The notes under the pieces are model-generated. The model saw nothing but the letters and a program-made list of their open reading frames with translations, was not told the DNA's origin and did not search any database. Below are positions 20,490 through 22,299 of a stretch of DNA of 64,000 nucleotides, one piece after another; positions within the stretch are counted from its first letter, which is position 1; each line of letters opens with the position of its first letter. This stretch comes from Chlorokybus atmophyticus (lineage: Eukaryota > Plantae > Mesostigma and Chlorokybus algae), in the NCBI GenBank assembly GCA_009103225.1, contig RHPI01003389.1, positions 124,001 through 188,000 on the forward strand, in the 5' to 3' direction. The position numbers and the translations under genes were made by a program.

Positions 20490-22299
20490 ATGGCGGAGGA
20501 GCAGGATATCCAGGCACTTGTCTTTGATAATGGTTCCGACATGGTTAAGGTGAGTCCCGTTCCTATGTTAGCTCCTGTAACACTGCTGCTCTGCTGTCGC
20601 CACGACACACACAATTGATGCCTGCTTGTCTGTTCAGGCTGGTTTTGCTGGCGATGACGTACCGAGGGCTGTTTTTCCGAGTATAGTCGGCCGCCCAAAG
20701 CACAAGGGCGTTGTGGTGGGTAAGGGGCAGAAAGATGCTTATGTTGGAGTTGAGGCGCAGAGCAAGAGGGGTATCCTGGCGCTGAAGTACCCAATTGAGC
20801 ATGGCATTGTCGCAAACTGGGACGACATGGAGAAGATCTGGCACCATACTTTCTACAACGAGCTTCGCGTTGCTCCCGAAGAGCATCCAGTGTTGCTGAC
20901 TGAGGCGCCGTTGAACCCTAAGGCCAACCGCGAGAAGATGACCCACATTATGTTTGAAACCTTCAATGTTCCAGCCATGTACGTGTCAATGCAGGCTGTC
21001 CTCTCTCTATACGCCAGCGGTCGCACCACTGGTAAGTGTTGCTACAGAGCATGTGCCTTGTTGCTCAAACCACTGCTTACTTGCGCTGCACGACATGGGT
21101 TATTTTGTCAGGCTGTATGCATATGCGAGGTCGTTGCAATCAGTTTAGATTGACTGCCAAACGTCTGACTGGTCTTACTTGCTTGCTTGGCAATGCATCA
21201 AGTGTCCTGCTACTTTATCCTGCAGGCATGGTGTTGGATTCTGGTGATGGTGTCACGCACACTGTGCCCATCTATGAGGGTTATGCTCTACCCCATGCTA
21301 TCCTTCGCCTGAACCTCGCTGGCCGAGACTTGACGGACTACATGATGAGGATTCTTACAGACCGCGGATACTCATTTACCACCTCTGCTGAGCGCGAAAT
21401 CGTTCGTGACATGAAGGAAAGGCTTGCTTATGTCGCACTGGACTACGAGCAGGAGATGCAGACAGCCACCTCCAGCTCCCATCTTGAAAAGACATATGAC
21501 TTGCCAGATGACCAGGTACACTGTTCAGGCGTTTCGCAGAAGGCAGTGTCCGTTTGCTCACCTGTCACACTCCCAGTTGGTGCAGAACAAATGCAACCAG
21601 TTCTTGGGTTGTCGCCTGTTTGCTGAGTATCCTTTGACTGGATGTAACTGGTTTTTGTTGCACAGGTCATCACTGTTGGCTGTGAGCGCTTCCGGTGCCC
21701 AGAGGTGCTCTTCTCACCCTCGCTGGTGGGCATGGAGTCCGTTGGCATCCATGAGACAACTTATAACTCCATCATGAAGTGTGATGTTGATTGTCGCAAG
21801 GATCTGTATGGCAACATTGTATTGTCCGGTGGCTCAACAATGTTCCCTGGCATTGCTGATCGTATGAACAAGGAGATTGCTCTGCTCGCCCCAAGCAGCA
21901 CGAAGATTAAGGTATAATCACGCCCTCAGCTTATCATGCAGTGACAGTTTTGCTACAACATGATGGGGCAAGCATCACTACCTTTGATGATGTGCGAGCA
22001 TGCTGGCACCTTCTTACTGCTGTAGCTAATGCACCCATTTGTCCATTGTAGGTGGTTGCTCCACCAGAAAGGAAATACAGCGTCTGGATCGGAGGGTCCA
22101 TATTGGCATCCCTCAGCACATTCCAACAGGTGACCACATTGCCTCCGCCGTTGATTGCTATGTGCCTTGTTGTACACAGAAGCTTGCATTGGCAGCCATG
22201 GAATGCATGTTGTTTTATGGTTCTTGCTTGCAGATGTGGATCTCCAAGGCTGAATACGATGAGTCAGGCCCGTCAATTGTCCACCGCAAGTGCTTCTAG
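20490..22299 (+). CDS. ACT: Divergent actin paralog, 377-aa frame fully open, about 17 substitutions relative to copy 1
   Basis: Exons 20490-20549, 20638-21031, 21226-21515, 21666-21911, 22052-22129 and 22234-22299 match copy 1 in length; splice sites intact; no own promoter or leader exon. Confidence 0.85.

Follow-up and report, generated by a model that had tools for sequence, protein, structure and literature searches.

The middle one of three tandem actin genes in Chlorokybus atmophyticus, indicated here as copy 2 (20490-22299, + strand), is, judging from its sequence, a real, intact, lineage-specific and divergent actin paralogue. It differs at 17 residues from the canonical gene of the same array. 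The reading that we prefer, with no more than even confidence, is that copy 2 is a retained minor actin isovariant, whose constraint is relaxed or shifted and whose behaviour toward filaments and nucleotide is altered.

The three genes, of six-exon layout and all on the + strand, were located by tblastn with exon peptides within the window, i.e. the whole 64-kb stretch analyzed, which is eukaryotic DNA with short GT-AG introns. Copy 1 (14441-16623) is a canonical and intact actin gene, whose six exons add up to 1134 nt. Copy 3 (25864 to about 27276) is a pseudogene, both truncated and frameshifted: nine indels are found in its exons 1-4, five of them breaking the frame, and homology stops in intron 4, exons 5 and 6 being absent. 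Copy 2 shares with copy 1 the strand, the six-exon layout and a length of 377 codons plus stop (1134 nt of exons); its five introns are all of the GT-AG type (ten splice sites), and neither a frameshift nor a premature stop is present in the 1134 nt. The proteins encoded by copies 1 and 2 are identical at 360 of 377 residues (95.5%); DNA identity, introns counted, is 89%.

Exon 1 of copy 2 (20490-20549), from the ATG start to a GT donor, encodes residues -1 to 18 and contains C10F and G15D. Seven replacements (A26V, M44V, M47K, D56V, T77A, Q121H, I136M) are located in exon 2 (20638-21031; residues 19-150), which has AG and GT borders, five (I151M, D179N, K215R, T235H, G245D) in exon 3 (21226-21515; residues 150-246) and three (S252C, I289C, M325T) in exon 4 (21666-21911; residues 247-328). 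Inside exon 2, the segment 20809-20849 corresponds to residues 76-89, which are highly conserved and comprise the T77A site. Exon 5 (22052-22129; residues 329-354) encodes the same protein sequence as its copy 1 counterpart, while exon 6 (22234-22299; residues 355-375 and the TAG stop) is the same as in copy 1 also at the DNA level. Numbering was set by aligning the exon pieces to solved actins: residues 5-20 of exon 1 correspond to 3-18, exon 2 starts at 19 (20638-20808 was used for its PDB alignment), residues 2-96 of exon 3 correspond to 152-246, and exon 4 corresponds to 247-328.

Every large exon of copies 1 and 2 matches the Pfam Actin family (PF00022); for copy 2 (7.6e-48 for exon 2, 1.4e-20 for exon 3, 2e-24 for exon 4) the matches cover profile positions 18-360. 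The protein has the length of a conventional actin, being colinear with 375-residue solved chains, with exon pieces that align end to end and no indels. An assignment of copy 2 to the actin-related proteins (ARPs) was ruled out, given its 80-86% identity to diverse actins in each exon and the lack of insertions.

Some further features of the array and of the window were recorded. Intron 1 is 456 nt long in copy 1 (14501-14956) and 88 nt long in copies 2 (20550-20637) and 3, so that an indel of 368 nt separates the two lineages. Over roughly its first 100 nt, intron 2 is near-identical in the three copies (15351-15446, 21032-21130 and 26395-26493), far above the conservation found elsewhere in the introns; either a regulatory role or a conversion tract common to the copies could explain this. 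At 22715-22742, about 420 nt past the copy 2 stop, lies an A-rich stretch of some 25 nt that has no equivalent at the corresponding site downstream of copy 1. Past the truncated copy 3, at about 28150-28200, there is a long (GA)n microsatellite. G+C content falls to 0.41-0.43 at 40001-46000, from about 0.51 in the rest of the window; two segments of about 330 nt, at 52415-52739 and 58972-59307, 6.5 kb apart, form a direct repeat with 91% identity.

The eight changes listed in the preliminary description of the gene (G15D, M44V, M47K, D56V, D179N, G245D, I289C and M325T) are all present in the alignment to solved actins, but the list was incomplete: nine further residues (C10F, A26V, T77A, Q121H, I136M, I151M, K215R, T235H and S252C) differ from copy 1. 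To evaluate conservation, 16 distinct actins of full length were taken from metatranscriptome contigs as a panel, on which 16 of the 17 replaced positions could be scored. Copy 1 carries the panel consensus at 14 of them, the other two, 235 and 252, being variable; the copy 2 residue has zero frequency at 15, and is found in one of the 16 actins at position 179. The phosphate-1 loop, DNGSG, reads DNGSD in copy 2, while position 15 is G in 16 out of 16 panel actins, as well as in copies 1 and 3. Seven near-invariant residues, M44, M47, D56, D179, G245, I289 and M325, are all replaced. Among the 120 nearest exon 3 fragments, D179 is found in 119 of 120 and G245 in 99 of 110, and N179 and D245 occur together in none of the 120. 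The polarity of replacement is 17:0 toward copy 2 (P=1.5e-5). Essentially all replacements thus arose in the lineage of copy 2.

Variability at the replaced positions does not exceed the average: 9 of 16 show at least 95% conservation in the 16-actin panel, vs 269 of 365 overall. Nor are the replacements clearly milder than those of the pseudogene: mean BLOSUM62 is -0.25 for copy 2 and -0.62 for copy 3, a difference that is not significant. Both features lean to a recent loss of constraint, and look like unfiltered changes.

In the three-copy alignment, copies 2 and 3 agree against copy 1 at most informative sites, both upstream and in introns 1-3, and are, on this basis, sisters. Sites unique to copies 1, 2 and 3 are, respectively, 63, 29 and 30 upstream, and 57, 20 and 23 in introns. 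M47K, D179N, T235H, G245D and I289C are common to copies 2 and 3, which places their origin, as read from the alignment, before the split of the two copies; the other 12 replacements are found in copy 2 only. The sharing with copy 3 already described for M47K, G245D and I289C is thus correct, though D179N and T235H had been missed. G15D and D56V, which had been considered younger than the shared changes, are both unique to copy 2, but for G15D the relative age is uncertain, because of its location in a conversion-like tract. In this tract (approximately 20523-20575, + strand), which spans part of exon 1 and the start of intron 1 and includes the C10F and G15D codons, nine informative sites in a row group copies 1 and 3 against copy 2 in the three-copy alignment, and none groups copies 2 and 3. 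It probably derives from a short conversion between copies 1 and 3, so that G15D and C10F may be older than they look.

The 3' part of copy 2 and its flank (21850-22633, + strand) show a different behavior: copies 1 and 2 are here 0-7.5% apart, vs 15-30% in the 5' introns and upstream, which probably indicates conversion between copies 1 and 2, or a mosaic. The identity of exons 5 and 6 is therefore not an independent sign of constraint.

The repeated unit is composed of a truncated HAD/NagD-like fragment, on the - strand, and an actin gene. One such fragment (19365-19896, - strand; Pfam HAD-like, 4.8e-9) lies directly upstream of copy 2 and matches 29569-30254 in a self-blastn comparison; another (24534-25290, - strand) lies upstream of copy 3. 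Both match a fuller HAD gene, also on the - strand, located after copy 3 at 29392-30254. The array therefore arose through two successive tandem duplications, the duplicated unit being some 5.4-6 kb long and ending inside the HAD/NagD-like gene.

Selection was evaluated by counting changes on each branch by three-taxon parsimony, over the 317 codons of exons 1-4. The branch leading to copy 1, taken together with the shared stem, features 29 synonymous and 7 nonsynonymous changes (pN/pS 0.07; P=3e-13 against neutrality). On the copy 2 terminal branch 22 synonymous and 11 nonsynonymous changes are found, or 12 when I136M is included (pN/pS 0.146; P=9e-8 against neutrality), whereas copy 3 accumulated 9 and 36, respectively (pN/pS 1.17), and neutrality is not rejected (P=0.72). 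The two terminal branches differ by Fisher test (P=5e-5), and so do replacements alone, 12 vs 36 in the equally old copy 3 (P=7e-4), a comparison independent of synonymous counts. On these values, and with no indel in copy 2 vs nine in copy 3, a history of copy 2 as a pseudogene ever since duplication was rejected. In the pairwise comparison of copies 1 and 2, dS is 0.244 and dN 0.022, with a ratio of 0.09.

Synonymous changes are in excess in copy 2 over copy 3 (22 vs 9; P=0.03), and undetected conversion tracts between copies 1 and 3 may explain part of this excess. A test allowing any amount of conversion from copy 1 to copy 2 was also applied: the nonsynonymous share is 0.26, vs 0.63 expected for a neutral copy 2 (P=2e-10). 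The pattern as a whole indicates that the copy 2 lineage stayed constrained after gaining G245D, D179N, M47K and I289C, and this continued constraint favours an isoform over decay. Frameshift odds, scaled from the five frameshifts per 45 substitutions of copy 3, give a probability of 0.026 for the lack of any frameshift on a fully neutral copy 2 branch, where all 33 changes are free, and of about 0.18 for a late neutral phase just long enough to yield 12 replacements. The preliminary description had left the choice between isoform and early decay; the isoform is favoured by constraint and a pseudogene history can be set aside, but a recent, short neutral phase is still compatible with the latter value. 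Codon usage, taken as a sign of low expression, gave no clear signal (GC3 0.616 vs 0.635).

A concentration of the substitutions at filament contacts had also been claimed. Classic long-pitch contacts pair residues 41-45 with 166-169 and 375, 322-325 with 243-245, and 286-289 with 202-204 (PMC5314930). Four of the 17 changes (44, 245, 289 and 325) fall on this narrow list of 24 residues, picked after the data had been seen, against 1.1 expected (P=0.018). A wider list of 53 residues, composed of the loops and residues named in PMC7247010, also receives four hits (P=0.21), and the union of the two lists (61 residues) receives five (P=0.12); 12 of the 17 changes lie outside any contact list. The claimed concentration is weakly borne out with the classic list and is lost with the wider ones, and an enrichment at interfaces may be regarded as no more than suggestive.

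Single contacts deserve attention. P243, D244 and G245 of one subunit touch P322 and M325 of the next (PMC7247010): in copy 2 both partners of the 245/325 contact are changed, G245D first and M325T later. I289C adjoins D286 and D288, which, with E205, make up the polymerisation cation site (PMC6187199). A tie of D56V to the stiffness cation site was discarded, as PMC6187199 names E57 and E167, and not D56, for which there is adjacency only. M44 and M47 had been described as D-loop methionines, as is confirmed in PMC7247010. Both are replaced in copy 2. Oxidation of M44 and M47 by MICAL is an animal mechanism; MICAL is not known from plants or algae.

A second, loose cluster of changes lies around the nucleotide site and the route by which phosphate leaves. 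The phosphate-1 loop contains G15D, and I136M adjoins Q137. The phosphate back door is opened through the R177-D179 salt bridge (PMC11260136), from which D179N takes away the acidic partner of R177. T77 and D179, both changed in copy 2, are also phalloidin contacts (PMC12570480).

Four copy 2 changes, G15D, I136M, D179N and G245D, are identical to dominant human actin disease alleles. In ACTA1, Gly15Asp is reported in fetal akinesia, and Ile136Met and Asp179Asn in nemaline myopathy (PMC7247010 supplement); other substitutions at positions 44, 47, 56, 245, 289 and 325 are tabulated in the same supplement. ACTC1 p.G245D leads to septal defects and late cardiomyopathy (PMC6950782), while ACTB G245D is an old transforming allele (PMC7247664). 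The polymerisation defect attributed in the preliminary description to beta-actin G244D was not found in the literature examined, which gives the allele and its transforming effect only. As a large fraction of all actin positions have a disease allele, positional overlap is weak evidence; the occurrence of four identical substitutions in one natural gene is nevertheless notable. In humans, each allele alters one residue, in the isoform that predominates in a given muscle or cell type; copy 2 combines four such changes with 13 others, and is a spare copy with an intact conventional gene next to it.

By alignment, the join between the HAD fragment and the actin-type upstream sequence falls at about 19893/19894 for copy 2 and at 25298 for copy 3, and corresponds to 13834 for copy 1; copies 2 and 3 thus keep only about 600 nt (19894-20489 and 25298-25863) of the copy 1-type upstream region (13834-14440 in copy 1). 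Within it, copy 2 changed as fast as the pseudogene, with 29 vs 30 unique changes in 353 columns. A donor-like GGCC|GTAAGC is found in copy 1 at 13852-13861 (GTAAGC at 13856), where copies 2 and 3 feature CTGAGC, and an acceptor-like GCAG precedes the ATG by six bases in all three copies; the donor-like and acceptor-like motifs suggest the presence of a 5' leader intron in copy 1. Copies 1 and 2 have the same orientation, copy 2 following at a distance of 3.4 kb. The evidence for selection implies that this context would have supported expression of copy 2 in the past.

Five public runs, from one organism and none recorded as RNA, contain a share of 0.05-0.11 of the words sampled from the copy 2 stretch; contigs cannot show absence. 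For comparison, the share of 31-letter words of the copy 2 stretch present in the copy 1 mRNA model is 0.087 and in copy 1 genomic DNA 0.13, while a copy 2 mRNA would contain 0.59. The shares found in the runs are explained by copy 1 alone, with no positive sign of copy 2 RNA.

In the order of events, the duplicated lineage acquired M47K, D179N, T235H, G245D and I289C before a second duplication; copy 3 then decayed, while copy 2 remained intact and underwent 12 further replacements, at about one third or less of the neutral rate. Under the isovariant reading, long-pitch contacts would be weaker or re-shaped, by M44V and M47K in the D-loop, by G245D facing M325T of the next subunit and by I289C beside the cation site. 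Handling of nucleotide and phosphate would be altered by G15D, by I136M beside Q137 and by D179N at the R177 back-door gate. The outcome might be a less stable, faster-turning or mainly monomeric actin, probably produced in small amounts, or confined to certain conditions or life stages.

Against this reading stand public runs with no positive sign of copy 2 RNA, the copy 1-type upstream region of about 600 nt, abutting a gene fragment, the location of the changes at sites of average conservation, the lack of milder changes, the four replacements harmful in humans and the failure to find, in the collections searched, an orthologue that would attest to long-term retention. Early decay is a possible, though rather unlikely, alternative: copy 2 would have encoded a working, somewhat divergent actin until recently, and would since have lost expression or function, so as to accumulate random replacements, with no frameshift or stop acquired yet. 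The 12 replacements found in copy 2 only, at positions of average conservation and as radical as those of the pseudogene, point in this direction, as do the severe ACTA1 allele G15D in the phosphate loop, an upstream region changing at the pace of that of the pseudogene, a sister copy already dead, and public runs, none recorded as RNA, with no hint of copy 2 RNA; the chance of escaping frameshifts, if the 12 replacements stem from a late neutral phase, is still 0.18. Decay is less easily reconciled with the lack of disabling lesions in the 1134 nt or the ten splice sites. Moreover, when scaled on intron branch lengths, the nonsynonymous rate appears similar on the older shared branch (7 nucleotide changes) and on the copy 2 branch (about 12), as would fit a steady, relaxed constraint.

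A pN/pS below 1, with no sign of adaptive change, and a location 3.4 kb past copy 1, in the same orientation and without most of the copy 1 upstream region, might also be expected of a gene transcribed to no use, e.g. by read-through from copy 1, in which selection removes only filament-poisoning variants. Null alleles of such a gene, however, would be neutral or favoured, so that its frame should have broken as in copy 3 (P=0.026 for no frameshift), and several of the fixed replacements are themselves dominant and filament-disturbing in humans: we regard this explanation as very improbable. Also improbable, if slightly less so, is that copy 2 encodes a self-sorting or toxin-insensitive back-up actin, a concept similar to that of NAP1, with filaments that would stay separate from copy 1 actin or withstand natural actin poisons. 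It would account for the older G245D and the later M325T on two sides of the same SD4-SD3 contact, for the change of both phalloidin contacts, T77 and D179, in the phalloidin/jasplakinolide pocket, and for the loss of both D-loop methionines; yet the enrichment at interfaces is not robust, most changes lie elsewhere, and the 245/325 pairing is a single observation, made after the fact.

Searches for an orthologue of copy 2 were made exon by exon, in collections that hardly cover this algal group: the best matches reached at most 86% identity in a word search with exon 3 and 85% in a metagenome scan, and an exact look-up of the exon 3 ORF returned no match. Two fragments, P0026 and P0028, carry the unusual copy 1 motif around residues 188-210 (Y-M-M-R-I-L-T-D-R...S-A-E-R-E) but not the rest of its sequence; a related streptophyte alga is their probable source.

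Few known proteins are as conserved as actin, and natural genes tolerating changes such as G15D, D179N or G245D are seldom found. Should copy 2 be expressed and functional, as the isovariant reading would have it, it would show which combinations of "pathogenic" changes a cell can use, and would provide a streptophyte alga with a second, functionally distinct actin, of an origin independent of chlorophyte NAP1. If it is merely decaying, the array becomes a time series of the death of an actin gene (canonical, relaxed, dead), of local interest only.

Among known systems, apicomplexan actins, with intrinsically unstable filaments, offer a partial parallel: a few changes at filament contacts shorten filaments (PMC3188518). 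Each of them, however, serves as its organism's main actin, with a much larger divergence and a behaviour demonstrated biochemically. Plant isovariants, vegetative and reproductive, are a few percent apart in protein and not fully interchangeable; they differ mostly at variable surface positions, keep G15, D179 and G245, and are encoded by old, dispersed genes with their own promoters. Copy 2 resembles them as a paralogue a few percent apart, and departs from them in the change of G15, D179 and G245. In Chlamydomonas, NAP1 is a second, divergent actin, barely expressed until the conventional one is disturbed; it is about two thirds identical to conventional actin, and is encoded by an old, unlinked gene. 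The likeness lies in the presence of a second, atypical actin beside a conventional one in an alga of the green lineage, and the expression pattern of NAP1 would fit a gene without visible RNA. Copy 2, in contrast, arose recently by local duplication and shares 95.5% identity with its neighbour; that it is an orthologue of NAP1 was ruled out, its nearest relative being the adjacent copy 1, with shared introns and flanks. There is a slim chance that copy 2, as a conditionally expressed back-up or self-sorting actin, would represent an independent NAP1-like arrangement at the base of streptophytes.
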